Shown in pieces: positions 5,735 to 17,003 of a stretch of DNA of 64,000 nucleotides. The position numbers and the translations under genes are program-made. Where the stretch lies: positions 124,001-188,000 of IMG/VR virus record IMGVR_UViG_3300027621_000003; one strand, given 5' to 3'. Each line of letters opens with the position of its first letter. Positions within the stretch are counted from its first letter, which is position 1. Under the pieces are notes generated by a model. It made no database searches, was not told the DNA's origin, and was given only the letters and a program-made list of their open reading frames with translations.

Positions 5735-6357
5735 AATAAATAAGGTTTTAATGAATTGGCATCTTGATATAATTGAGTTTTGAATTCTTCAGTAAACTCA
5801 CCATTACTGGCAATTGATGTTGGGAAATCAGAAAACACCCAACTTACACATAAAACACCAATTAAATGTTTATCGGTATTATAAATTGGAACACCAGCGT
5901 GTGCGTAGTTTCCATAATGTCTTAATAAACTTTTGGTTGGTAAATCACTTATTTGATTATCAACATCAACATAAAACAATCGGTTACCAAGTGTTTCTGT
6001 TAAATACCAATTATAATTTGAAATTAAAATATTTTGAAATTTTTCTGAAATTTTTTCTAATCCATCTGAACATCTTTCATATGTCACAGATGCTTTTTGC
6101 ATTGGTGCTTGAGTATAAAAAGTTCCACCATTATGAAATTGAATGATGTAAACTCTATCTGTAATGTACTTTCGTCTTAATTCTTTTAATGTAAAGTGGA
6201 TTAATTCATCTCTTTGAATCTGTTCCACCAATTTTTCACGACTTTTCTTTTCTTTATTTTTGTCTTGGGTTTTTCTAAAATAACCCGCAGTCACCAACGC
6301 AACTATAACTGAAGCCACCGCTGTTATCAAAGTTTTAAATACATCTGCCCAATCCAT
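5731..6357 (-). CDS. single-TM protein with GAF-like domain (possible T4 gpT-type holin)
   Basis: N-terminal TM, then DRVYIIQFHNGG...VPIY...LIGVLCV GAF-like fold; near the M23 peptidase. Confidence 0.45.
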   Translation of the reverse strand: MDWADVFKTLITAVASVIVALVTAGYFRKTQDKNKEKKSREKLVEQIQRDELIHFTLKELRRKYITDRVYIIQFHNGGTFYTQAPMQKASVTYERCSDGLEKISEKFQNILISNYNWYLTETLGNRLFYVDVDNQISDLPTKSLLRHYGNYAHAGVPIYNTDKHLIGVLCVSWVFSDFPTSIASNGEFTEEFKTQLYQDANSLKPYLL

Positions 6358-6424
6358 TAGTAAAAATATATTGTTTAGTAAATAAATACAAAAAAACCTG
6401 ATATAAATCAGGTCTTTTTAAATT

Positions 6425-6610
6425 TTATTCACCACTTGGTATAAACATCCATAACAACAAATATGTTATACCAATTGGAAATGGATAAAAAAGTAATACC
6501 ACGGAAAATACACGAAGAAAAATTGGGTCAATATTCATACGGTATGCGATACCAGCACATACACCACCGATTACTCGGTCTACTTTTGGTCTATACATTT
6601 TTTGTTTCAT
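6425..6610 (-). CDS. pspC: PspC-domain membrane protein
   Basis: MYRPKVDRVIGGVCAGIAYRMNIDP..LR PspC signature. Confidence 0.85.
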   Translation of the reverse strand: MKQKMYRPKVDRVIGGVCAGIAYRMNIDPIFLRVFSVVLLFYPFPIGITYLLLWMFIPSGE

Positions 6611-6611
6611 T

Positions 6612-6688
6612 TGGTGGACCCTGTAGGGCTTGAACCTACGACCTACTGATTATGAGTCAGCCGCTCTGACCAACTGAGCTAAGGGTCC
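6612..6688 (-). tRNA. tRNA-Ile2 (CAU, lysidine type)
   Basis: GGACCCT...CTGACTCATAATCAG...GGGTCCACCA; Ile2-type body, encoded CCA. Confidence 0.8.
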
Positions 6689-6717
6689 ATTGTTATACAA
6701 AGATAATAAAAAAATTC

Positions 6718-7140
6718 TTAATCCCACCAATGTTCAATTTTTTGTTCAAGAATTTTAAATAATAAACGTTTAGCTTTATTGTGCTTATCTGTTACCATTT
6801 TAAGAGCTTCAGATGACCGTTTATCTAACTCATAAAACCCATCATAATATGATTCATTTTGTATTTTATCAATTAACCTAACACAAGTCATCATTAACTC
6901 AGCATCACGTTCAGAACTTTCATGAGAACCATATTTAACAAGATGTTTGGCTTGTTTTTCTAACTTGAATTTTAATACCTGAAAAACATAATGGTGGTCC
7001 CAATCCCTATCTTTCCATATTATCCAAAACCATTTATATAGGTTCTGAACTCCATACTTAATGTATTTGTGTTGGTTGGGTAGTTCCCATCTTACCCATC
7101 TGTAAAGTTTCCAATACCATTCGTTATATTCTGTGTTCAT
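6718..7140 (-). CDS. hypothetical phage protein (Trp-rich, DRDWD motif)
   Basis: 140-aa ORF inside tRNA operon 1. Confidence 0.6.
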   Translation of the reverse strand: MNTEYNEWYWKLYRWVRWELPNQHKYIKYGVQNLYKWFWIIWKDRDWDHHYVFQVLKFKLEKQAKHLVKYGSHESSERDAELMMTCVRLIDKIQNESYYDGFYELDKRSSEALKMVTDKHNKAKRLLFKILEQKIEHWWD

Positions 7141-7154
7141 AGTTATGATTTTAG

Positions 7155-7228
7155 TAGACGAGAAGGGACTTGAACCCCCAACCTTGATGATATAAGCATC
7201 CTGCTCTAACCTGTTGAGCTACCCGTCC
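7155..7228 (-). tRNA. tRNA-Ile (UAU)
   Basis: Cloverleaf; anticodon arm GATG-CTTATAT-CATC. Confidence 0.85.
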
Positions 7229-7233
7229 AAATA

Positions 7234-7419
7234 TTAGTTGAAATGAGTACAATCCCCTTGAGTATTATCCCACGGGCATATGTACATTTCTGGTTGGGTA
7301 TGTATGTAAACTCCATCAACACCAAAGTTGTCATTTTCACCATACAACCCAAGTGACTGACTTAATTCTGTCAATTCGGTTAAAAAATCTTCCTGCGTCA
7401 TTTGAGTCTTGGGGTCCAT
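7234..7419 (-). CDS. hypothetical protein
   Basis: 61-aa ORF between tRNAs. Confidence 0.45.
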   Translation of the reverse strand: MDPKTQMTQEDFLTELTELSQSLGLYGENDNFGVDGVYIHTQPEMYICPWDNTQGDCTHFN

Positions 7420-7432
7420 GATTATTGTGTTT

Positions 7433-7509
7433 TGGAGCCTGAAGACGGACTCGAACCGCCAACCCCCTGATTACAAGTCAGGTGCTCTACCAATTAAAGC
7501 TATTCAGGC
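7433..7509 (-). tRNA. tRNA-Thr (UGU)
   Basis: CCTGA-CTTGTAA-TCAGG; CCA encoded. Confidence 0.9.
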
Positions 7510-7528
7510 ATTTATGTTTTAATATATA

Positions 7529-7816
7529 TTACTTTCCTTGTTTTTTGTAAACATAAGTGATGGTATCACCAATGTTGTACTTCCTCAAAGAAGTAAACTC
7601 ACTGCTGTCTGACATGAAATACTTGTACTTCCTGTCAAGTTCAATTGTGCTGTGAGGTGGCAATTGAACCATTGAATCAATAACGAACTTTTCAACTACA
7701 TCACCTTTTTCAATCAAAGGTTTCTGTTTACAAGCTCCTAACATAGTGGCAAGAATAATAGATAAAATAATCCATAAGGAAAAATAAAGTCGGGGGTCTT
7801 TTAATATGTTTTTCAT
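7529..7816 (-). CDS. putative membrane/lipoprotein
   Basis: TM followed by LGAC; start placed after TACCTTTG promoter. Confidence 0.55.
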   Translation of the reverse strand: MKNILKDPRLYFSLWIILSIILATMLGACKQKPLIEKGDVVEKFVIDSMVQLPPHSTIELDRKYKYFMSDSSEFTSLRKYNIGDTITYVYKKQGK

Positions 7817-7817
7817 G

Positions 7818-8369
7818 TTACAAAGGTAATATATTTTTTTCAAAGTTTTTTACATAATTGTCAACTATGTGTTGAATTTCATTTTGATATCTACTATGAA
7901 CATACTGATGATGTGTTGGACATAATGGTACCAAGTTTTTTGGTTCGTTATTTTGGTGATTATTGTCATAATGATGGATAGTCACAATTTTATTTTCACT
8001 ACAAATAATACATTCTTTTTTGTGATAATTAAAACCAATTCTTCTATAACCGTTACGTTCTTGACTATCACCAAAATTTCCCCAATTTGGGTTATTTTCA
8101 CCACTTCTAAAAAAGGTGTTTGAACAAGAATAAGAACATGTTGTTCTTTCTTCTTTCCCTCCAACTTTTGTTTCAAATTGAATATCACAAACAGGACACA
8201 ATTTAATAACTGATTGGTATTTTATTTCTCGACTTCTTAAATGCGAAACGTCAATTTTATTTTCAACAATGAAATTTTCAAATTTTTTTCGAGTTTTTCC
8301 ATTGTCAAAACCATAGAGTTTTTTAATAGCTTCAGCCCTTGTCTTAGAATTTTTAATTATTTCTACCAT
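7818..8369 (-). CDS. HNH homing endonuclease
   Basis: CPVC/CSYSC zinc motifs and CIIC...IHHYD.NH.NN..NL..LCPTHH. Confidence 0.8.
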   Translation of the reverse strand: MVEIIKNSKTRAEAIKKLYGFDNGKTRKKFENFIVENKIDVSHLRSREIKYQSVIKLCPVCDIQFETKVGGKEERTTCSYSCSNTFFRSGENNPNWGNFGDSQERNGYRRIGFNYHKKECIICSENKIVTIHHYDNNHQNNEPKNLVPLCPTHHQYVHSRYQNEIQHIVDNYVKNFEKNILPL

Positions 8370-8431
8370 ATATAATAAATATATTGATTGTCGTTAAAAT
8401 TAGATTTGGTCAAATATTTTTTTAACGATTG

Positions 8432-8507
8432 TAGCGTAGACTGGATTCGAACCAGCGTGCCTCTGCTCCCAAAGCAGATGAGATAAACCTGACTCCTCTA
8501 CTACGCT
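8432..8507 (-). tRNA. tRNA-Pro (UGG)
   Basis: TCTGC-TTTGGGA-GCAGA. Confidence 0.85.
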
Positions 8508-8516
8508 ATTTGTTTG

Positions 8517-8586
8517 TGGACACTGTGGGAATCGAACCCATACGTTCTGATTGCAAATCAAACGGTCTGCCGTTGACATCAGGCCC
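8517..8586 (-). tRNA. tRNA-Ala (UGC), atypical
   Basis: TTTGA-TTTGCAA-TCAGA with G3:U70; irregular acceptor and D arms. Confidence 0.65.
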
Positions 8587-8597
8587 TTTTATTTTTG

Positions 8598-8669
8598 CGG
8601 TCCCACCGGGAATCGAACCCGGCACTTTGCCGTGACAGGGCAATATTATAGCCGATTAACTACAGGACC
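8598..8669 (-). tRNA. tRNA-Asp (GUC)
   Basis: TTGCC-CTGTCAC-GGCAA. Confidence 0.9.
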
Positions 8670-8737
8670 GTAAGTTAGTAAACCCGGGCCCAACAAGCCG
8701 TGATAAACACGGAAGGGCCCTTTTTAAGATTTACTTT

Positions 8738-8813
8738 TGGAGCGAGAGACCAGGTTCGAACTGGCGACCCTCAGTTTGGTAAACTGATGCTCTACCGACT
8801 GAGCTACTCTCGC
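8738..8813 (-). tRNA. tRNA-Gly (ACC)
   Basis: GCGAGAG acceptor, U73, CCA; anticodon arm TCAGT-TTACCAA-ACTGA. Confidence 0.85.
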
Positions 8814-8818
8814 TTTTG

Positions 8819-8890
8819 AGCGAGTGGGGAGAATCGAACTCCCATATCCAGCTTGGAAGGCTGGAGTAATAGCCTTTATACTACACTCGC
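8819..8890 (-). tRNA. tRNA-Gly (UCC)
   Basis: CCAGC-CTTCCAA-GCTGG. Confidence 0.9.
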
Positions 8891-8982
8891 TTTTTTCGAG
8901 TCAGAGTAGTCACGGCCACCTCTTATCCTTCTGACTCTTGATGTAAAAGTGGCCAATGTGGCACGACCCAAGTTACATCCAT

Positions 8983-9056
8983 TGGTTGCGGACCCGAGAC
9001 TCGAACTCGGAACTATGGGTTATGAGCCCATTATGTTACCATTACACCAACCCGCG
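8983..9056 (-). tRNA. initiator tRNA-fMet (CAU)
   Basis: C1:A72 mismatch, three G-C pairs in anticodon stem, CCA. Confidence 0.9.
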
Positions 9057-9065
9057 ATTTATTTG

Positions 9066-9137
9066 TACTCGGTAGGGGAGTCGAACCCCTCTTTCCAGGA
9101 TGAAAACCTGGCATCCTAACCGATAGATGAACCGAGC
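9066..9137 (-). tRNA. tRNA-Glu (UUC)
   Basis: CCAGG-TTTTCAT-CCTGG. Confidence 0.9.
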
Positions 9138-9150
9138 AATTATTTTTTTC

Positions 9151-9171
9151 TTACCAATACGTCAAAGAACT
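9151..9171 (-). promoter_or_regulatory. boxA-like antitermination element
   Basis: AGTTCTTTGACGTATTGGTAA, identical to 16088..16108, directly upstream of the first tRNA. Confidence 0.7.
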
Positions 9172-9242
9172 TTTTTGTTCTGTTGTCTTATTCAACAACA
9201 ATACAAAGTTAATACATTTTTTTAATACTACCAAACAAACAC

Positions 9243-9274
9243 AAAAAAAACCCATCCTTTCGAGATGGGTTTTT
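9243..9274 (-). terminator. attenuator terminator of tRNA operon 1
   Basis: AAAAACCCATC-TCGAAAG-GATGGGTTTTTTTT. Confidence 0.8.
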
Positions 9275-9295
9275 GTAAGATATTTTTTTACAATA

Positions 9296-9364
9296 TTATC
9301 CCATCTCCACTTTGGAAGTATCAGCCTCTGTTGCTGGTGTGCCGAATATGAATATGGTTTTCAT
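9296..9364 (-). CDS. leader peptide of tRNA operon 1 (22 aa, MKTIFIFGTPATEADTSKVEMG)
   Basis: Hand-translated; last codons GAGATGGG are complementary to the terminator 5' arm. Confidence 0.7.
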   Translation of the reverse strand: MKTIFIFGTPATEADTSKVEMG

Positions 9365-9421
9365 TGAATGTATTATTATTTGATTTCTTATTAAATATAA
9401 TAAACTTTTAAAAAGTGTCAA

Positions 9422-10690
9422 TTAAAACGCCAAAGAATTTACATAACTTACCGATTTTTGTACAGACTTTTCAATTGTTTTAATAATTGAGTCCAAATTT
9501 AACTCGGCAACATTACCAATTGAGATTCTAAACCATCCTTTGTTACTCTTTGAACCAAAATATTCAAACGGAACAATTCCCAACCCACAGGTATTAATTA
9601 AGAACGAAATATACTCTTCTGTGGATGAAAATGAATGAACATAACCCAAGTAAACCGAAATATAAATTCCACCATCAGGTTTTTGGTAATCAACATTATG
9701 ACCTTTGTTTTTCAATTCTTCCAACTTGTCACAGATTTTATCTGATATAAATTCATACGATTTTGTTACATAGTTTATGTGAGAAATGTAATCTTCATAA
9801 TCTACTCTGATGTACGCATCCAATGCTCGTTGTTCAGGTTTTGGTGCCCATGCTCCAATGTGAGACAAAACTTCGGTTATCTTTCCAATAATATCTTTTG
9901 GACCAAACAACCAACCAACACGAACACCAGTTGCGTTTAATGATTTTGAAATACCATCAGCACAAATCAAATAATCTCTGATTTCAGGACATAAAGTTAA
10001 TGGGTGGATAAACAAACCTTCTTTGGTGATGTCAGAATAAATCTGGTCAAAGAACAAATACAATGGTCTTGAACCTACTTGTGTTGACCTGATTTTATTT
10101 TCTCTCACAATCAACTCACAAATACCTTTCAGAACTTCGGGGTCAATTACACGACCTGTTGGATTTTGTGGCGAACAAATGCAAACCAATGATGTTTTAT
10201 CACTTATTCTACCGTCAACATCTTCAACGGTTGGAAAAAATGAATTTTCAGGTGTACATTCAATTTCTTCTTTTTGTGCATTATGTAAAAAACAATAGTG
10301 GTTATTATTCCAAGATGGTACAGGATAAATCACCTCTTCATTCGGATTTACCGTGGCTTTATAAACCGTATAAATCAATGGACGAACTCCACCACCAATT
10401 AAGATTTCTTCAGGTGAATAATCAACATTGAACTGATGTTTAATGTGTTTGGAAACAGATTCCCTTAATTCAAGTTCTCCTTGTGAGTTTGGATAGTTGG
10501 TTAAATCCCACTCGTAAGCATCTTGAATGTGTTTTCTTAATTTTGAGGGTATTGGCCATAGTTTGGAATTAAAGTCACCTATGGTTAGGTTAGATACTGG
10601 TTTTGTTTTAGCAATTTCTTTGATTTGTTGTGAGATTTTAATAATTTCAGAGCCAACAATATTGTTCCCTACATTTGATAATTTTTCCAT
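9422..10690 (-). CDS. class I/II PLP-dependent (aspartate-type) aminotransferase
   Basis: SPQNPTG, DQIY, GISKSLNATGVRVGW (PLP lysine) and WFRIS motifs. Confidence 0.9.
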   Translation of the reverse strand: MEKLSNVGNNIVGSEIIKISQQIKEIAKTKPVSNLTIGDFNSKLWPIPSKLRKHIQDAYEWDLTNYPNSQGELELRESVSKHIKHQFNVDYSPEEILIGGGVRPLIYTVYKATVNPNEEVIYPVPSWNNNHYCFLHNAQKEEIECTPENSFFPTVEDVDGRISDKTSLVCICSPQNPTGRVIDPEVLKGICELIVRENKIRSTQVGSRPLYLFFDQIYSDITKEGLFIHPLTLCPEIRDYLICADGISKSLNATGVRVGWLFGPKDIIGKITEVLSHIGAWAPKPEQRALDAYIRVDYEDYISHINYVTKSYEFISDKICDKLEELKNKGHNVDYQKPDGGIYISVYLGYVHSFSSTEEYISFLINTCGLGIVPFEYFGSKSNKGWFRISIGNVAELNLDSIIKTIEKSVQKSVSYVNSLAF

Positions 10691-10718
10691 TATCAAAAGT
10701 ATAAGACACTAATAAGAA

Positions 10719-12278
10719 TTATTCAAATATTTTACTATAAAATTTGTCAAAGTTTGGTCCTTTAACCAAACCACTTTTTCCTTGTCTGGCACTAATACCT
10801 GCCATATTTGACGCCGAAAAGAAACTACTATATTGACCAGGACCACTTCTTCTACCTATTTGAGTTAAAAATTCGTTCTTATTACCGACCTTACCTTCAG
10901 GAATGTTTTTAAGATATTCCATAAATGCTTTGGTTAACGCACCTTTACCTGTGAAGGTGTATTTTGACCTGGTATAAGTCTTAGACTTTGTTGGTGGATA
11001 CCTATCTAACAAGAATTCATCTTCACTAAGTTCTTTGTATATTGTATAATAAAATTCTTTATACAAATTATCTAATAAATTACTAGTTCTTCTTAAAACG
11101 TGTTCAGGGTCACTCTGTCTATCCTCATCCAATATTAAAGTTTTAGTATAGGTTGATTTTTTAACAATATTTTGGTCCGTATTATATGGTATTATCTCAG
11201 CGTCAAATCTAACGATGTGTTTTCCTATCATTACTTGAGTATTATAAACCTTAAAATAACAATCAATAACGCCATCTTCACTATAAGAAGTTTTTCCTTC
11301 TTTATCAATTTCTACAACCTCCCAAGGCGTACTAATTCTAATACTCGTATTATCTCTATCACTATCTTCAACGCTTGGTCTTCCAATATAAAACTTTAAT
11401 TTCCCACCTTTGAATTGGTATATCTCATTGTGGCTTGTAGTAACTTTTGGTATTATTTTATAAATAACATCCAAGACATCTTCTTTAGGGAATGATGTTT
11501 TATAGTCATTAACCATTGAATTATACGCATCTTTTGGCATATGAGCCAATACTGATTCTTTTTCTCTTGATGTCAATCTTTCGTCAGTTGAATCGTACCA
11601 AATTGAATCTGAATCAAATTTTCCATTCTTTGGTGCGTGAATGGCCATTTTGTAAAATTTATTATCCCTGTCAACATTTTTTAATATTAAATAATACAAG
11701 TTTCCATTTGAACTATATTGATTGAAATACGATGGATTACCTTTCATTGTTGTACACCATCTTGTACCTGAACCATAATAACAAGATGCGGTAAATGATT
11801 TTGGTTTTATAACCAACAACGTATCGTTTTCAAAAATTTTATCTATTTCTTTCTTGGCTAATTTTTCTGTCTGTTTGGTCTCAACGTCAGTTTTAATCTT
11901 TTGAGCTTCATTGAAAAAATCTTGTATATTTGTACTGTATTGTCTAAACTCAGGATATTTGAATTTTGATTTGTGTTTTTCAAATGTATCTAAAGAAGCA
12001 ACAATCTTGTCAATTTCACTCCTCATTCTAAATATTAGAGTTCTTGCTCTGTCTTTGTCTAAAGGCTCAGCTTCACCTGAATAATAATTTACGGTATAAT
12101 AATAATCCAAAATATCATTAAGATATTTGTAATTAGTCTCTTTTATAAAAGGTTCACCAATTAAAAAATCATACGCAGACGCATCATCCATGTAAGTGGA
12201 TATCATCTTTCTTTCACCATCAATACTTTTTTGGAATTTCTTAAATGAGTCTTCCTTACGACCTTCAAATAAAATCAT
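10719..12278 (-). CDS. ASCYYGSGTRWCT-domain protein, paralog 2
   Basis: 519 aa; shares the domain and the LFEGRKEDS N-terminus with 625..2418. Confidence 0.6.
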   Translation of the reverse strand: MILFEGRKEDSFKKFQKSIDGERKMISTYMDDASAYDFLIGEPFIKETNYKYLNDILDYYYTVNYYSGEAEPLDKDRARTLIFRMRSEIDKIVASLDTFEKHKSKFKYPEFRQYSTNIQDFFNEAQKIKTDVETKQTEKLAKKEIDKIFENDTLLVIKPKSFTASCYYGSGTRWCTTMKGNPSYFNQYSSNGNLYYLILKNVDRDNKFYKMAIHAPKNGKFDSDSIWYDSTDERLTSREKESVLAHMPKDAYNSMVNDYKTSFPKEDVLDVIYKIIPKVTTSHNEIYQFKGGKLKFYIGRPSVEDSDRDNTSIRISTPWEVVEIDKEGKTSYSEDGVIDCYFKVYNTQVMIGKHIVRFDAEIIPYNTDQNIVKKSTYTKTLILDEDRQSDPEHVLRRTSNLLDNLYKEFYYTIYKELSEDEFLLDRYPPTKSKTYTRSKYTFTGKGALTKAFMEYLKNIPEGKVGNKNEFLTQIGRRSGPGQYSSFFSASNMAGISARQGKSGLVKGPNFDKFYSKIFE

Positions 12279-12307
12279 ATATATAAATACTCACAATTAT
12301 GTATTTG

Positions 12308-12381
12308 TAGCGAGGGAGGGAATTGAACCCCCCACCTCAGGGTTATGAATCCTGCGCTCTAACCGACTGAGCTACCTCGCC
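12308..12381 (-). tRNA. elongator tRNA-Met (CAU)
   Basis: GGCGAGG...CAGGATTCATAACCCTG. Confidence 0.85.
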
Positions 12382-12385
12382 ATGA

Positions 12386-12997
12386 TTATTCTATGGTTTC
12401 ACCATCCAATGTATAAATCATACATGAGGATGATTTCCCTGAATTATCCAAACAATCTTCAATTTCTAATGGTTGTCCTTTAAAAAAGACTTGACCGATA
12501 AAATCATAATCACCTTCTGGTGTTCCTATTGAACCTGATGAGTACGTAAAATCTGTCGGAGTTGGTACTGTGTCAGACTCAAGTGAAAATTTAAACATTC
12601 CACCTTTGTTTTCATCAATACTCAAATAGACATTTGTTGGTCCTTCTTTTTGAGGAAACGCATTATACTCTCTGTACTCATACTTTTCTTCAAAATCTTC
12701 AATTGTTTCGTATAAGTCGGCGGTTTCATCAATACCAAACTCTAATACTTTATTTTCTTCTTCATCAAGAAGTTCAAAGTGCATTGTACCATTGTCAAAC
12801 GCTTCGGTTTTGTGAAAGATTTCACCGTCCCAAAAATCAAGGTCCAAAAGTTCATCTAAATCAAAACGGATTTCATGAAGTTCAGAAAAACCTTCCTCTT
12901 CCATTTTATCTTTAATAATTTGTATTTGTTCGTCAGTTAGAGATTTGCAGACTGCCTCAAAAGACCATCCATAAGTGTTAAGTGTGTATTTAGCCAT
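12386..12997 (-). CDS. hypothetical acidic protein
   Basis: 203-aa ORF with TATATTTG promoter. Confidence 0.6.
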   Translation of the reverse strand: MAKYTLNTYGWSFEAVCKSLTDEQIQIIKDKMEEEGFSELHEIRFDLDELLDLDFWDGEIFHKTEAFDNGTMHFELLDEEENKVLEFGIDETADLYETIEDFEEKYEYREYNAFPQKEGPTNVYLSIDENKGGMFKFSLESDTVPTPTDFTYSSGSIGTPEGDYDFIGQVFFKGQPLEIEDCLDNSGKSSSCMIYTLDGETIE

Positions 12998-13032
12998 ACG
13001 GCAAATATAAATTATAAACCGTGATTCGTCAA

Positions 13033-13470
13033 TTATTTTAAGAATCTTAATTTGTATAATGTTGAGTAAATCAATTCTTGAACTCCATCAATTTGATTTT
13101 GAATATAAGATTCTTTAACCGATGTCCTATTTTTTTCAATATTTTCATCTAATTCTTTAAAATAAGCTATTACTTGTTCTGTTGATTTGTAATCAACTGT
13201 TTTAATTGTTTTATAACCAGTAATTATTTCGTATTTTCCTTGATAACTTTCAACAATATTATCAACTAACCCATCAATTCCATCATAATATTCTTGTAAA
13301 GCTTTATGTTCAGAAAATGATGATTGTGATTTTGTCTGCCAATGAAAGATATGTACTTGAGACTGTGAATGTAATAATGTTGCAATCATATCAACCACAT
13401 CGGCAGTTTCAGTTGCAGGATTTGATTTTGATGATAAACCATTTAAAAGGTCTCTTTTTGTAATTTCCAT
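13033..13470 (-). CDS. ferritin/Dps-like four-helix protein
   Basis: HIFHW...EHKALQEYYD...VD..VE pattern. Confidence 0.6.
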   Translation of the reverse strand: MEITKRDLLNGLSSKSNPATETADVVDMIATLLHSQSQVHIFHWQTKSQSSFSEHKALQEYYDGIDGLVDNIVESYQGKYEIITGYKTIKTVDYKSTEQVIAYFKELDENIEKNRTSVKESYIQNQIDGVQELIYSTLYKLRFLK

Positions 13471-13491
13471 ATCAATAAATATACTGATGTG

Positions 13492-14175
13492 TTAATATGT
13501 CTTAAACTTCATTTCTTTGATAACACAATTTCCAATTTTTTTATGTCCTGATGGTGCCATATGACAAAGTCCATCCCAACAATCCGATTTTGTAATCACA
13601 CGAGTATTAATCACTTTTCCACCAACAATTTTTTTTATCAATTCATTCTGAAATTTGGAATACTTAACTCTGTAGTTTGGATTTTCTGGTGTGTTGATGC
13701 AAATTAATGGGTCAAATCCGGTAATTACAACTGGTTTAACACCTTTGGAATTACAAATGTTTACAATTTTTTGAATGTTCTTTACTGCGCTTTCAATGGT
13801 GATTTTGCTGTTATACATATCATTGGCACCTCCATAGATAAAACAATAATCTAAACCATTGTGAATAGATTCTTTTGCTCTTTCTAACATCCAACCTGTG
13901 GTTTTTCCACCAACAGATATGTTATTCATTCTCATTTTTGTTTTGTTGGATAGAGTATATTGCCAACCATTAGGATTTGATGTGTGAGAATCACCAATAA
14001 AAAGAACGTATTTTCCTTTTACATCCACAATTGTGTCTTGTGGTTTAATTTTTACCGTATCAATTTTAACGGTATCTTCAATTTGTTTATTGTTACCCCA
14101 AACTTTCCAACTTGTTATGAATCCTAAAATTGCTATAACAATGACCAAAATAATTGCTTTTACTAAATTTTTCAT
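13492..14175 (-). CDS. SGNH/GDSL hydrolase, membrane-anchored
   Basis: IGDSHT, GG.TT, YGGAND and DGLCH blocks. Confidence 0.85.
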   Translation of the reverse strand: MKNLVKAIILVIVIAILGFITSWKVWGNNKQIEDTVKIDTVKIKPQDTIVDVKGKYVLFIGDSHTSNPNGWQYTLSNKTKMRMNNISVGGKTTGWMLERAKESIHNGLDYCFIYGGANDMYNSKITIESAVKNIQKIVNICNSKGVKPVVITGFDPLICINTPENPNYRVKYSKFQNELIKKIVGGKVINTRVITKSDCWDGLCHMAPSGHKKIGNCVIKEMKFKTY

Positions 14176-14281
14176 ATTTTTTATTAAAAAACACTCTCAA
14201 GCTCTCTACTCCCAGTTCCGAGGAATTGTATCTTACTTAGCCCGTCTCACCACTGTGTGGGTACTTGAGTTTATGTTTTTG

Positions 14282-14359
14282 TAGTCAGGACAGGATTCGA
14301 ACCTGTAACACCGGTTTGACCACTTACGTGGTTGCGTCTATCCATTCCGCCACCTGACT
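14282..14359 (-). ncRNA. tRNA-like RNA (Leu-type body, no canonical anticodon loop)
   Basis: AGTCAGG/CCTGACT acceptor, GGCGGAATGG..AGACGC D arm, TTCGAAT T loop; anticodon arm ACCAC-GTAA-GTGGT. Confidence 0.7.
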
Positions 14360-14436
14360 ATAGTTGTCAGTCTCTCCTGACCGTCACCCCCACTCCGAAG
14401 GTATGAGCCTTCATATGTGATGCTGGGTTAGCTTTG

Positions 14437-14510
14437 TGGTGTGAACGGGAATCGAACCACGTGGCACGTAGGGTTTCAATCTACTGCTCTACCTGCTGAG
14501 CTACCACACC
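14437..14510 (-). tRNA. tRNA-Phe (GAA), second copy
   Basis: GTAGA-TTGAAAC-CCTAC; slightly irregular T stem. Confidence 0.75.
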
Positions 14511-14537
14511 ATTATTGTTATACAAAGTTAAAATATA

Positions 14538-15014
14538 TTATCCAATTTTCCAAGCTCCAATTATGTGTTTTTTTATTTTTTTACCGTCCTCAGGGTTACC
14601 AATAACAACACCATCTTTAATGGTAAATGCGTGACCTTTAACAACCACCATGTAAGAACCAACAGGATATTTTTTAATGAACGAAAATGTTGTTGTTGCT
14701 CTTAATTTTTTAACACCTTTAACTACAACATAATACAACATGGTATTGTGTTCCTCAGAAATAATTTGAACGTCTTTACCGTTAATTTGTTTACCATTCT
14801 TTGATAACAAATTCATGCCAGTACCAAGTAAAAAAGTACCTTTACCATTTTTTCTCTTGAAAGTTTCTTTAACAAATTGGTGGGCGGAATCATAGTCCAT
14901 ATCCGCGGCTGATGCAATTGCCCTAACAACACAATCGTTTTTTTCAGATTTGGCAATTTTTGATTCAGTATATCCTTTGATTGCGTTTGAAGATGATATA
15001 AACCCCTTTTCCAT
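14538..15014 (-). CDS. hypothetical phage protein (NDCVVRA...GHAF motif, possible Cys/His dyad)
   Basis: Start moved to MEKG after TATATTTG promoter. Confidence 0.55.
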   Translation of the reverse strand: MEKGFISSSNAIKGYTESKIAKSEKNDCVVRAIASAADMDYDSAHQFVKETFKRKNGKGTFLLGTGMNLLSKNGKQINGKDVQIISEEHNTMLYYVVVKGVKKLRATTTFSFIKKYPVGSYMVVVKGHAFTIKDGVVIGNPEDGKKIKKHIIGAWKIG

Positions 15015-15060
15015 ACTACAAATATACAACAGGTATTTGACATTACAAAAAAATATTTTG

Positions 15061-15133
15061 CTCCCCGGATAGGATTTGAACCTATGACCTATCGCTTAAC
15101 AGGCGAGTGCTCTAACCACTGAGCTACCGAGGA
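15061..15133 (-). tRNA. tRNA-Asn (GUU)
   Basis: TCGC-CTGTTAA-GCGA. Confidence 0.9.
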
Positions 15134-15139
15134 ATGTTG

Positions 15140-15221
15140 TACCAAAGGTGGGAGTCGAACCCACACGTCTTTAAGACATTAGTTTCTAAGACTAATGCGG
15201 CTACCGTTACGCCACTTTGGT
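15140..15221 (-). tRNA. tRNA-Leu (UAG)
   Basis: TTAGT-CTTAGAA-ACTAA, long variable arm. Confidence 0.9.
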
Positions 15222-15227
15222 ATTTTG

Positions 15228-15298
15228 CGCAAGTGGAAGGACTCGAACCCTCGCCAAAAGTTTTGGAGACCTTTATGCTACCATTACACCACACTTAC
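15228..15298 (-). tRNA. tRNA-Trp (CCA)
   Basis: AAGGT-CTCCAAA-ACTTT, G73. Confidence 0.9.
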
Positions 15299-15305
15299 GT
15301 ATTTG

Positions 15306-15380
15306 TGATTCCTGAGGGACTCGAACCCCCACATCTTCTCGTCCGTAGCGAGATGTTTTATCCAATTAAACTAAGGAACC
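15306..15380 (-). tRNA. tRNA-Arg (ACG)
   Basis: TCTCG-CTACGGA-CGAGA. Confidence 0.9.
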
Positions 15381-15383
15381 ATT

Positions 15384-15458
15384 TGGGGTGACTGATGGGA
15401 TTCGAACCCACGACACTCGGCACCACAAGCCGATGCTCTACCACTGAACTACAGTCAC
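15384..15458 (-). tRNA. tRNA-His (GUG)
   Basis: TCGGC-TTGTGGT-GCCGA, C73, CCA; G-1 not encoded. Confidence 0.9.
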
Positions 15459-15460
15459 AG

Positions 15461-15534
15461 AGTCCATAGTTGGAATCGAACCAACGAATAACAGTTTTGC
15501 AGACTGTCCCTTTGAACCGCTCAGGCATATGGAC
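15461..15534 (-). tRNA. tRNA-Cys (GCA)
   Basis: ACAGT-CTGCAAA-ACTGT, U73. Confidence 0.9.
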
Positions 15535-15542
15535 TTATATTC

Positions 15543-15589
15543 TATAATCCTCCAAATCTAGTAAAAAAAGTGAGTTTTGGAGGATTATA
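15543..15589. repeat. 14-bp inverted repeat hairpin in tRNA spacer
   Basis: tataatcctccaaa ... tttggaggattata. Confidence 0.7.
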
Positions 15590-15596
15590 AGTTTTG

Positions 15597-15678
15597 TGCC
15601 AGCAGTAGGACTCGAACCTACGAACTCAAATGAGAGCGGGTTTACAATCCGCCGCAATTGCCGCTATGCGATACTGGC
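15597..15678 (-). tRNA. tRNA-Tyr (GUA)
   Basis: GCGGA-TTGTAAA-CCCGC, long variable arm. Confidence 0.9.
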
Positions 15679-15685
15679 ATTTTTG

Positions 15686-15758
15686 TCTTTCCTGTTGGAT
15701 TTGAACCAACGACATCTTGGATGTAAGCCAAGTGCTCTTCCAACTGAGCTAAGGAAAG
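15686..15758 (-). tRNA. tRNA-Val (UAC)
   Basis: CTTGG-CTTACAT-CCAAG. Confidence 0.9.
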
Positions 15759-15764
15759 ATATTG

Positions 15765-15838
15765 TGACCCCATCGGGACTCGAACCCGAAACCCCCGTGT
15801 TAAAAGCACGGTGCTCTAGCCAATTGAGCTATAAGGTC
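15765..15838 (-). tRNA. tRNA-Lys (UUU)
   Basis: CCGTG-CTTTTAA-CACGG. Confidence 0.9.
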
Positions 15839-15844
15839 ATATTG

Positions 15845-15915
15845 TTACCCCTGAAGGATTCGAACCTCCACTAAGTGGACCAAAACCACTCGTCCTGCCG
15901 TTAGACGAAAGGGTA
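15845..15915 (-). tRNA. tRNA-Gln (UUG)
   Basis: AGTGG-TTTTGGT-CCACT. Confidence 0.9.
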
Positions 15916-15920
15916 ATTTA

Positions 15921-15997
15921 TGGTTGGTGATACAGGACTTGAACCTGTGACCCCTACGGTATCAGCGTAGTGCTCTAACCAACTGAGCTAATCACCA
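15921..15997 (-). tRNA. tRNA-Ile (GAU)
   Basis: CTACG-CTGATAC-CGTAG, CCA. Confidence 0.9.
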
Positions 15998-16006
15998 ATG
16001 TATTTG

Positions 16007-16079
16007 TGGGGTAGACAGGTATCGAACCTGTTCCTTCGGATTTTCAGTCCGGCGCAATGACCTCATCTGCCACTACCCC
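16007..16079 (-). tRNA. tRNA-Phe (GAA)
   Basis: CGGA-CTGAAAA-TCCG. Confidence 0.85.
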
Positions 16080-16087
16080 ATTTTTGG

Positions 16088-16108
16088 TTACCAATACGTC
16101 AAAGAACT
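16088..16108 (-). promoter_or_regulatory. boxA-like antitermination element
   Basis: Identical 21-mer to 9151..9171. Confidence 0.7.
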
Positions 16109-16109
16109 T

Positions 16110-16146
16110 AAAAACAAAAAAACCCGAACCTTGTGAGTTCGGGTTT
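16110..16146 (-). terminator. attenuator terminator of tRNA operon 2
   Basis: AAACCCGAAC-TCACAAG-GTTCGGGTTTTTTTGTTTTT. Confidence 0.8.
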
Positions 16147-16167
16147 CCTTTTTTAGGCTACTACGTG

Positions 16168-16263
16168 TTAACTTATAACACCCGAACTTGAAAATACGCG
16201 AAGATACCAATTCTGACAGAATTGAATGACATGTTTCACGATTTGTTTATTTACGAGTTTCAT
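16168..16263 (-). CDS. leader peptide of tRNA operon 2 (31 aa, MKLVNKQIVKHVIQFCQNWYLRVFSSSGVIS)
   Basis: Hand-translated; downstream of TATCTTTG promoter; 3' end carries AGTTCGGGT, complementary to the terminator 5' arm. Confidence 0.8.
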   Translation of the reverse strand: MKLVNKQIVKHVIQFCQNWYLRVFSSSGVIS

Positions 16264-16312
16264 TGTGTTTAGTATTAAATATGGTACAAAGATACAAAAG
16301 TTTCTTGATATG

Positions 16313-16573
16313 TTAAATATTTTTTTCGTTTTTATTTTTTAATAACCAGTTGGCTCCGACTACAAACCCTTGTTTCCATTTTGTAATATCATCATCACAC
16401 ATCCCTTCACTGTATTGTTGATATTTGTCATCAGCGCCAATATGAATCATTTGTTGGATTCTTTTTTCTATAAAACCGGGCTTAGTTTCAAACTCAGGTT
16501 CTCCCAATTCAACCATACCATTTTTCCACTTTTTCCAAGTGTCAAAATCTTTTAAATCTTCAATGTTAATCAT
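16313..16573 (-). CDS. hypothetical protein
   Basis: 86-aa ORF. Confidence 0.5.
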   Translation of the reverse strand: MINIEDLKDFDTWKKWKNGMVELGEPEFETKPGFIEKRIQQMIHIGADDKYQQYSEGMCDDDITKWKQGFVVGANWLLKNKNEKNI

Positions 16574-16586
16574 ATTATTTTTTTAA

Positions 16587-17003
16587 TTATAACCTGTCTT
16601 TTACAATATTCAATAAGTCCTCATTAAAAGGTACTCCATGTCTTGAATCAAATTCATCTTCCAATCTTTCAGTTGACATATCATTTTTCTTCAATAAAAT
16701 ATACGCTCCCAAATCAGCTTCAATTTCATCTTTTTCAGACCTCGGTCCGTTGTGTCCCAATAACAAATGTGAGATTTCATGAGCTTCAATAAATTTCATG
16801 TCATCCATAGTTAAACCATCATCACCCAAAAATATTTCACCGTCAATAAAAATTGTTTTGAATTCTGGTGCAAGAAATCCATAACCGTATTGGTCAAAAA
16901 TTTTTCTCATTGCACTATAATTTGGATTTTCTTTGAATACCAAATTAATATTCATGTTTGGGATAAAACTACTTTTGTACGCTATGATGTCTTGGTCTTC
17001 CAT
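16587..17003 (-). CDS. HExxH metallopeptidase-like (ImmA/IrrE-like)
   Basis: AHEISHLLLGH...EIEAD. Confidence 0.65.
   Translation of the reverse strand: MEDQDIIAYKSSFIPNMNINLVFKENPNYSAMRKIFDQYGYGFLAPEFKTIFIDGEIFLGDDGLTMDDMKFIEAHEISHLLLGHNGPRSEKDEIEADLGAYILLKKNDMSTERLEDEFDSRHGVPFNEDLLNIVKDRL

Follow-up and report, generated by a model that had tools for sequence, protein, structure and literature searches.

How does a phage time and dose the tRNAs that it carries, and can the tRNA genes of one array be controlled by the supply of their own products? tRNA genes in general are thought to be controlled at the promoter and not by attenuation. The question is raised by a locus in front of a tRNA array within a stretch of 64,000 nucleotides (hereafter the window; positions 124,001 to 188,000 of IMG/VR record IMGVR_UViG_3300027621_000003), where a 22-codon open reading frame (ORF), followed by a predicted switchable terminator, spells out amino acids whose tRNAs follow. 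The original prediction described this as a leader-peptide attenuator matched to the downstream tRNAs, with a second promoter supplying basal transcription. We examined its anatomy, conservation, predicted folding and occurrence elsewhere, and conclude from sequence alone that the phage probably makes more of these tRNAs when they run short.

Anatomy of the locus

All the features that had been listed (promoter P1, ORF, terminator, second promoter P2, boxA and tRNAs) were found on the minus strand where they had been placed, and the observation is confirmed (Table 1).

Table 1 Features of the tRNA array 1 locus and related positions in the window.
Feature	Position	Strand	Description
Aminotransferase-like gene	9425-10696		Pfam PF00155; precedes P1
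Promoter P1	9421..9394	-	TTGACA-16-TATATT(TA); TTGAC at about -33/-35, TATATTTA at -7
Leader ORF	9364..9296	-	ATG at 9364, stop at 9298..9296; 22 codons plus stop (MKTIFIFGTPATEADTSKVEMG)
Proposed control codons 3-16	9358..9317	-	T I F I F G T P A T E A D T
Predicted antiterminator 5' strand	9307..9300	-	GAGATGGG; last eight sense-strand bases of the ORF before the final A and the stop codon
Small predicted hairpin	9293..9273	-	TTGTAA / TTACAA, inside the antiterminator loop
Intrinsic terminator	9274..9243	-	Hairpin plus T8 tail at 9274..9246; 5' arm CCCATCT at 9263-9269, 3' arm at 9251-9257
Complement of the antiterminator strand	9269..9262	-	CCCATCTC, in the terminator's 5' arm; exact complement of GAGATGGG
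Promoter P2	9235..9204	-	TTTG-N20-TAACTTTG, Bacteroidota consensus
Hairpin after P2	9201..9180	-	TTGTTGT / ACAACAG, in the position of a boxB-like element
boxA-like element	9170..9151	-	GTTCTTTGACGTATTGGTAA; 34 nt after the end of P2, 13 nt before tRNA-Glu
tRNA array 1	9137..6612	-	Interrupted by ORFs; Glu (at 9137), initiator Met, Gly-TCC, Gly-ACC, Asp, divergent Ala-TGC, Pro, Thr, Ile-TAT, Ile2-CAT
CAT tRNA, initiator-like	8983-9056	-	C1xA72; three G-C pairs in the anticodon stem
Ala tRNA, marginal	8517-8586	-	Anticodon TGC; G3:U70
CAT tRNA, Ile2	6612-6688	-	83% identical over its full length to E. coli genes annotated tRNA-Ile
Terminator after the array	6420..6389	-	The only strong same-strand terminator after 9246
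Second boxA-like element	16088-16107		Same 20-mer, just upstream of the other array
Sister element	16088-16320		Leader and terminator of the other array

P1 is the best sigma-70-like hit in the 11.5 kb scanned (11 of 12 positions), and TATATTTA is a 7-of-8 match to the Bacteroidota -7 motif. P2 matches the Bacteroidota housekeeping promoter (-33 TTTG / -7 TAnnTTTG, spacing 18-21 nt) exactly; this motif occurs 15 times in the window against 4.8 expected. The boxA 20-mer occurs exactly twice in the window (0.02 expected), each time just upstream of a tRNA array.

ARAGORN found Glu, Met-CAT, Gly-TCC, Gly-ACC, Asp, Pro, Thr, Ile-TAT and Met-CAT. The Ala tRNA is called only by Rfam, with 29.5 bits against a 29-bit threshold, and has a poor acceptor stem and D arm, although relatives carry a normal Ala-TGC at that position. 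The first CAT tRNA has initiator features, and the assignment of the last as Ile2-CAU is supported by its match to the E. coli genes; the array therefore carries two tRNAs for ATA. Single tRNAs elsewhere in the window (Ser pair, Leu-TAA, Arg-TCT) have no leader.

The window is essentially identical to a 294,914-bp IMG/VR contig. A search of GenBank phages with 2.3 kb around the element gave only tRNA hits and no related cultured phage. Promoter type and boxA both point to a Bacteroidota host: the 16-nt core of boxA lies, letter for letter, 12-42 nt upstream of 23S rRNA in Cryomorphaceae, Crocinitomicaceae and Fluviicola genomes and in one unclassified Bacteroidia genome. Freshwater Bacteroidota jumbo phages of this size and G+C content have been described, without any mention of tRNA regulation (PMC9723584).

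Conservation of the element

Conservation of the leader and covariation of its pairing in related phages had been named beforehand as tests. A pattern taken from the 3' part of the leader recovered 31 distinct variants from viral and lake metagenome contigs, two further hits being chance matches; 30 variants were complete enough to align. TTGA and TATATTTA of P1 are invariant while the spacer varies; the ATG and the reading frame are kept throughout, the only indel in the ORF being 3 nt long and confined to one lineage. In the part of the ORF that the pattern did not fix, codons 8-11 vary only at third positions (GGC/GGG/GGA, ACA/ACG, CCA/CCG, GCA/GCG), codons 12 and 13 never change, and codon 14 switches between Ala and Gly, the one amino-acid change in the core, both being array amino acids. 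Codon 6 is always ATA, although ATA makes up only 27% of Ile codons in this phage. The original prediction had noted that both Ile codons are ATA; only that at codon 6 is invariant, codon 4 being ATA, ATC, ATT, AAA or AAC.

Residues with no tRNA in the array drift: K2 (K/I/R/Q), F5 (F/N/Y/S) and F7 (F/Y). The eight invariant residues outside the search pattern (T3, I6, G8, T9, P10, A11, T12, E13) are all array amino acids, against two of the five variable positions (Fisher p 0.035). This is the signature of a translated ORF whose amino-acid or codon-box identity matters. Codons 2 and 4 use ATT or ATC in some variants, however, which the array's Ile tRNAs would not be expected to read.

P2 is likewise under selection: in the 30 variants TTG, TA and TTTG are fixed (one has TTTT for TTTG), while nn varies among AC, AG, AT, TC and TA. 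The caveat of the original prediction was therefore right; P2 is a real promoter, the attenuator is not the sole route of transcription into this array, and attenuation can be only one of two inputs. A simpler reading is that the terminator only ends upstream transcription (of the aminotransferase gene or of a tiny stand-alone gene), that P2 alone drives the tRNAs, and that the composition of the ORF and its complementarity to the terminator are incidental. In its favor, P2 is a conserved consensus promoter, the tRNA array of crAss001 has only a plain promoter and no leader, and a 22-codon ORF on its own is weak evidence in an AT-rich genome. We consider it unlikely, since P1 is conserved separately from the upstream gene, substitutions in the ORF core are synonymous only, leaders match their own arrays and terminator arms in ten families (see below), and most families have only 9-22 nt between terminator and boxA, which leaves no room for a promoter.

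The hairpin after P2 had 95.9% of cells paired across the 30 variants, with two compensatory cells; similar hairpins precede boxA at array heads that lack an attenuator. This locus differs from most of its class (see below) in having P2 and a boxB-like hairpin between the terminator and boxA.

Match between leader and array

With Ala included, 15 of 21 residues belong to the eight amino acids of the array (0.44 expected), and 8 of 8 set members are covered (joint simulation p 0.0019); in codons 2-16, 12 of 15 residues fall in the set (p 0.005). Six of 22 residues (K, F, F, S, K, V) have no tRNA in the array. Against the set of the sister array this leader scores 7 of 21, and the sister leader scores 4 of 30 against array 1.

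The sister element is the clearest case. Its 31-residue leader contains all twelve amino acids of its array, including Cys, Trp, His and Tyr, and spells Leu as CTC and CTT and Arg as CGC, matching Leu-TAG and Arg-ACG of that array, in a phage in which 74% of Leu codons are TTR and 76% of Arg codons are AGR (from the codon analysis, only split-box comparisons were used). The phage splits 20 amino acids between two arrays, each with its own matched leader.

Predicted RNA switch

The RNA that exists before the terminator's 3' arm is made is predicted to fold into an 8-bp helix between GAGAUGGG and CCCAUCUC, enclosing the small hairpin (-15.0 kcal/mol, z -4.89, 0 of 200 shuffles as good). The duplex of the leader strand with the terminator arm has -11.2 kcal/mol, the best of 10 arms tested. 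Once the 3' arm is added, the terminator (hairpin energy -14.1 kcal/mol) is the minimum-energy fold. Small upstream hairpins are predicted, but none sequesters GAGAUGGG; in the absence of a clear protector (1:2) hairpin, an untranslated leader would read through.

Within the family the stems are almost invariant and MAFFT misaligned the one diverged lineage, so that pair counts were uninformative; covariation rests on this lineage (L246/L278, aminotransferase 67% identical), which was read by eye, and the search pattern fixed part of the leader's 3' end. L278 has GGGTGGG in the leader, CCCACCC in the arm and GGTGGG in the 3' arm, which gives two A-U to G-C exchanges in the antiterminator and one T-A to C-G in the terminator, while the encoded peptide end changes from VEMG to VRVG. 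The composition match is not significant in L278 (10 of 22, p 0.15). The center of the ORF is thus constrained as codons and its end as RNA, as an attenuator predicts. A micropeptide acting in trans, with the terminator as its ordinary gene end, could account for the conserved peptide core GTPATE[A/G]DT, but appears very unlikely, since the C-terminal residues change radically where the RNA pairing is kept, and peptides of different families share nothing except MK at the start and the match to their arrays.

Occurrence at other tRNA arrays

The boxA 16-mer was used only as a handle to collect tRNA array heads from IMG/VR; it lies 6-19 nt before a tRNA in about 40 of 76 distinct phage contexts, in front of and inside arrays. 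Every head with a terminator just upstream also has a short ORF ending 19-39 nt before it, which nearly always starts with Met-Lys and follows a TAnnTTTG promoter. Ten independent families, judged by unrelated leader and terminator sequences, share the order promoter, short ORF, terminator, boxA, tRNA array. Their leaders match their own arrays (summed z 25.6; none of 200,000 re-pairings as good, p<5e-6), and their 3' ends match their own terminator arms (same test, p<5e-6). All ten are predicted to fold into an antiterminator before the 3' arm is made; an inner hairpin is predicted at the same place in 9 of the 10 (none of L016, L032, L022, L092, L004, L042, L085, L050 and L072 is missing one; L013 is less clear). 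In the sister element and most other families the predicted attenuator is the sole route of transcription into the array. Searches of GenBank phages with the leaders of other families gave only tRNA hits.

Further examples were found without the boxA motif: L261, found by synteny with the aminotransferase gene (22 of 35 residues match, joint p 1e-5); Cellulophaga phage Calle_1, with two reciprocal leaders before its two arrays (p 0.006 and 0.016) and the same TATATTTA in front of a leader; and Tenacibaculum phage Gundel_1, in which a run YSYSCFSSWF precedes Tyr-like, Trp-like, Phe, Ser, Cys and Ser tRNAs and the last codons complement the terminator arm. The paper describing these two cultured phages only counts their tRNAs (PMC8776804). 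In all, the architecture heads the window's other array and at least ten unrelated arrays, and recurs with matching leaders at at least 13 other array heads.

In a limited sample of 120 rows from a scan of bacterial chromosomes, the boxA 16-mer never had a tRNA within 60 nt; in Bacteroidota it lies in rRNA operons. No evidence was found in this limited sample that hosts use the leader design.

Interpretation

The interpretation given in the original prediction is supported by conservation, covariation, predicted folding and a strong cross-lineage statistic. We propose ribosome-mediated transcription attenuation that senses the supply of the array's own charged tRNAs, with a probability of roughly 0.75. 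In this model, RNA polymerase starts at P1 and transcribes the ORF, whose central codons (Thr, Ile-ATA, Gly, Pro, Ala, Glu, Asp) call for the tRNA species encoded downstream. If these charged tRNAs are plentiful, the ribosome would run to the stop codon and cover GAGAUGGG, the terminator would form and the P1 transcript would end at the U-run. If any of them is scarce, a ribosome held up at codons 3-15 would leave GAGAUGGG free to pair with CCCAUCUC; the antiterminator would form first and polymerase would read on through P2 and boxA into the tRNA genes. The result would be negative feedback, added to transcription from P2. The boxA probably loads the host Nus antitermination complex, so that the long untranslated, ORF-interrupted array is transcribed to the terminator at 6420..6389, an inference from what is known of rRNA operons.

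Sequence anatomy, conservation, covariation, predicted folds and the leader-array match across many lineages come from the analysis itself, whereas translation of the ORF, stalling, conditional read-through in vivo, and Nus recruitment with its effect on termination are inferred, without transcript, ribosome or reporter data. The array does not depend on read-through, the Thr and Ile tRNAs lie 1.6-2.5 kb downstream behind inserted ORFs that may have their own promoters, and transcription-translation coupling is not known to have been studied in Bacteroidota. A non-specific attenuator, reporting overall translation capacity (ribosome availability, host shut-off), would agree with the lack of an evident protector hairpin and with leaders that carry many different codons rather than runs of one. 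It would not need leaders matched to arrays, however, and is considered unlikely, since the two leaders of this phage, and the two of Calle_1, are reciprocal, and rare residues such as Cys and Trp appear exactly where the array has those tRNAs.

If the element works as inferred, it is a feedback loop in which translation of a test peptide measures the pool of specific tRNAs and adjusts their synthesis; it gives a direct handle on why particular tRNAs are grouped into particular arrays, and yields natural multi-tRNA sensors that could serve as reporters of tRNA availability in Bacteroidota. Two cultured phage-host pairs, Calle_1 on Cellulophaga sp. HaHa_2_95 and Gundel_1 on Tenacibaculum sp. 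AHE14PA, carry the same design, so the idea is open to testing at the bench. More tentatively, Bacteroidota phages, from 73-kb podoviruses to 295-kb jumbo phages, might carry a previously undescribed class of 'tRNA-stat' attenuators, in which shortage or destruction of any listed tRNA, for example by host shut-off or tRNA-cleaving defence nucleases, stalls the ribosome and derepresses exactly the array that can replace it.

Comparison with known systems

The proposed mechanism belongs to the leader-peptide attenuators; new are the target (tRNA genes), the many-amino-acid leader defined by the content of the array, the phage setting, the Bacteroidota host and the coupling to boxA. A full-text literature search, with little coverage of subscription journals, found nothing that links leader peptides or attenuators with tRNA genes or phage tRNA arrays. 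The E. coli tRNA-Phe genes pheU and pheV, reportedly preceded by an attenuator-like leader, were considered as a precedent and dropped, since in the K-12 sequence both have only a promoter directly upstream and no leader ORF.

Attenuators of amino-acid biosynthesis operons in Proteobacteria (trp, his, pheA, leu, thr, ilv) likewise have a promoter, a short ORF with regulatory codons, an intrinsic terminator and an alternative helix that uses the terminator's 5' arm, and a ribosome at the stop codon masks the antiterminator strand. There the regulated genes are enzymes and the leader has a run of one amino acid; here they are tRNAs, the leader lists seven or eight different amino acids once to four times each, a second promoter and a boxA follow the terminator, and the element is phage-borne in a Bacteroidota host. 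No Rfam leader family reaches its threshold and no curated family covers 9151-9421; the Thr_leader and Phe_leader models give only weak sub-threshold hits to the sister element (Thr_leader) and to the Gundel_1 element. Multivalent attenuators (ilvGMEDA with Ile/Leu/Val; thr with Thr/Ile) also sample several amino acids with one leader, but two or three linked by a shared pathway, whereas here up to 13 are sampled and the set is defined by the tRNA genes downstream. The pheST attenuator of E. coli, with the pheM leader, controls a component of the translation apparatus and responds to charged tRNA, but controls a synthetase for one amino acid. T-box riboswitches sense tRNA status and switch a terminator/antiterminator pair, but bind uncharged tRNA directly and need no translation; no T-box match was found at E<=1 in positions 6000-17000 of the window. 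In rrn operon antitermination (boxA with NusB/NusE and partners), boxA also precedes structured, untranslated RNA genes, and the phage 16-mer is identical to that upstream of 23S rRNA in Flavobacteriales-type genomes; the phages use it in front of and inside tRNA arrays, and here it is combined with an upstream predicted attenuator.

Second tRNA array

A predicted sister attenuator, inferred from sequence alone, precedes the second tRNA array. It consists of a TATCTTTG promoter, a 31-codon leader containing all 12 amino acids of its array, a AGTTCGGGT segment that complements the terminator arm, and the terminator itself; the same boxA follows only 11 nt after the terminator, with no second promoter. 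Coordinates of this element and of the other features described here are listed in the table.

Coordinates of the predicted sister attenuator, boxA-like elements, tRNA genes, and associated features in the window and in two cultured phages (L326, Tenacibaculum phage Gundel_1; L327, Cellulophaga phage Calle_1)
Feature	Sequence	Position	Strand
Predicted sister attenuator	Window	16088-16320	minus
Leader of the sister attenuator	Window	16263..16168	minus
Terminator of the sister attenuator	Window	16150..16116	minus
boxA-like element, two copies	Window	9151-9170; 16088-16107	
Ser codon TCC (S17) of the first leader	Window	9314-9316 (9317-9319 region)	minus
tRNA-Gly, anticodon ACC	Window	8738-8813	minus
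tRNA-Ala(UGC)-like gene	Window	8517-8586	minus
Region with the similar anticodon arm at the head of the first array	L327	about 2501-2570	
tRNA with two-base anticodon	Window	14281-14359	minus
ORF-interrupted part of array 1	Window	6690-8400	minus
Cys/His-rich ORF, no Pfam hit	Window	7818-8369	minus
Inserted ORF	Window	7529-7843	minus
Inserted ORF	Window	6718-7140	minus
Two sub-threshold tRNA-like genes	L326	3143-3262	
tRNAs found by Rfam, not annotated in the record	L327	4716-4787; 5420-5494	

Unusual tRNA genes and the leader Ser codon

One tRNA-Gly of the first array carries the anticodon ACC, an A at position 34 being unusual for Gly; relatives have GCC at the same array position in some lineages and ACC in others. 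The tRNA-Ala(UGC)-like gene is non-canonical, with a short D arm and a weak acceptor stem, and is missed by ARAGORN. A similar anticodon arm (TTGATTTGCAATCAG) is found at the head of the first array of Cellulophaga phage Calle_1. This may be a conserved odd tRNA rather than a decayed copy. A further tRNA is reported by ARAGORN with a two-base anticodon ("ta") and is scored by Rfam at 41 bits; it may have an irregular anticodon loop.

The single Ser codon of the first leader is TCC, which accounts for 4% of Ser codons in this phage. Some relatives (loci L300, L301, L316, and L322) carry a tRNA-Ser(GGA) inserted just after tRNA-Glu, but this phage does not; the codon could be a relic, or it could be kept by the small hairpin in which it takes part.

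Insertions in array 1 and the locus in relatives

Array 1 is interrupted by three ORFs. Relatives differ in tRNA order, in extra tRNAs (Ser-GGA, Gly-CCC, a second Met), and in inserted ORFs, which suggests frequent insertions, possibly by homing endonucleases. In relatives that lack the tRNA array after the aminotransferase gene (loci L236, L242, L244, L245, L248, L250, L255, and L272), the same position holds a small gene encoding a signal-peptide/lipobox-like protein (M-K..A-L-A-S-C-G), followed by a strong terminator.

Comparison with cultured phages and known elements

In Tenacibaculum phage Gundel_1, the two sub-threshold tRNA-like genes lie between the terminator and the annotated tRNA-Phe, with anticodons GTA (27.8 bits) and CCA (25.7 bits), respectively; the tRNA listed as "undetermined" in the record has anticodon GCA. 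For Cellulophaga phage Calle_1, the feature coordinates printed for the reverse-complemented locus are about 52 nt lower than where Rfam and the sequence itself place the tRNAs.

The Phe_leader model of Rfam gives a weak hit (27.9 bits, E 0.019) to the leader-terminator unit of Gundel_1. In the window and in phage loci L001-L112, the boxA-like 16-mer lies 6-19 nt before a tRNA in about 40 of 76 distinct phage contexts, both at array heads and between tRNAs inside arrays. Placement and sequence of this motif were observed directly, whereas its function in antitermination, like that of the sister element in attenuation, is inferred. The 16-mer is identical to the motif upstream of 23S rRNA in Flavobacteriales-type genomes. 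Phages appear to borrow the host rRNA antitermination signal for their tRNA arrays.
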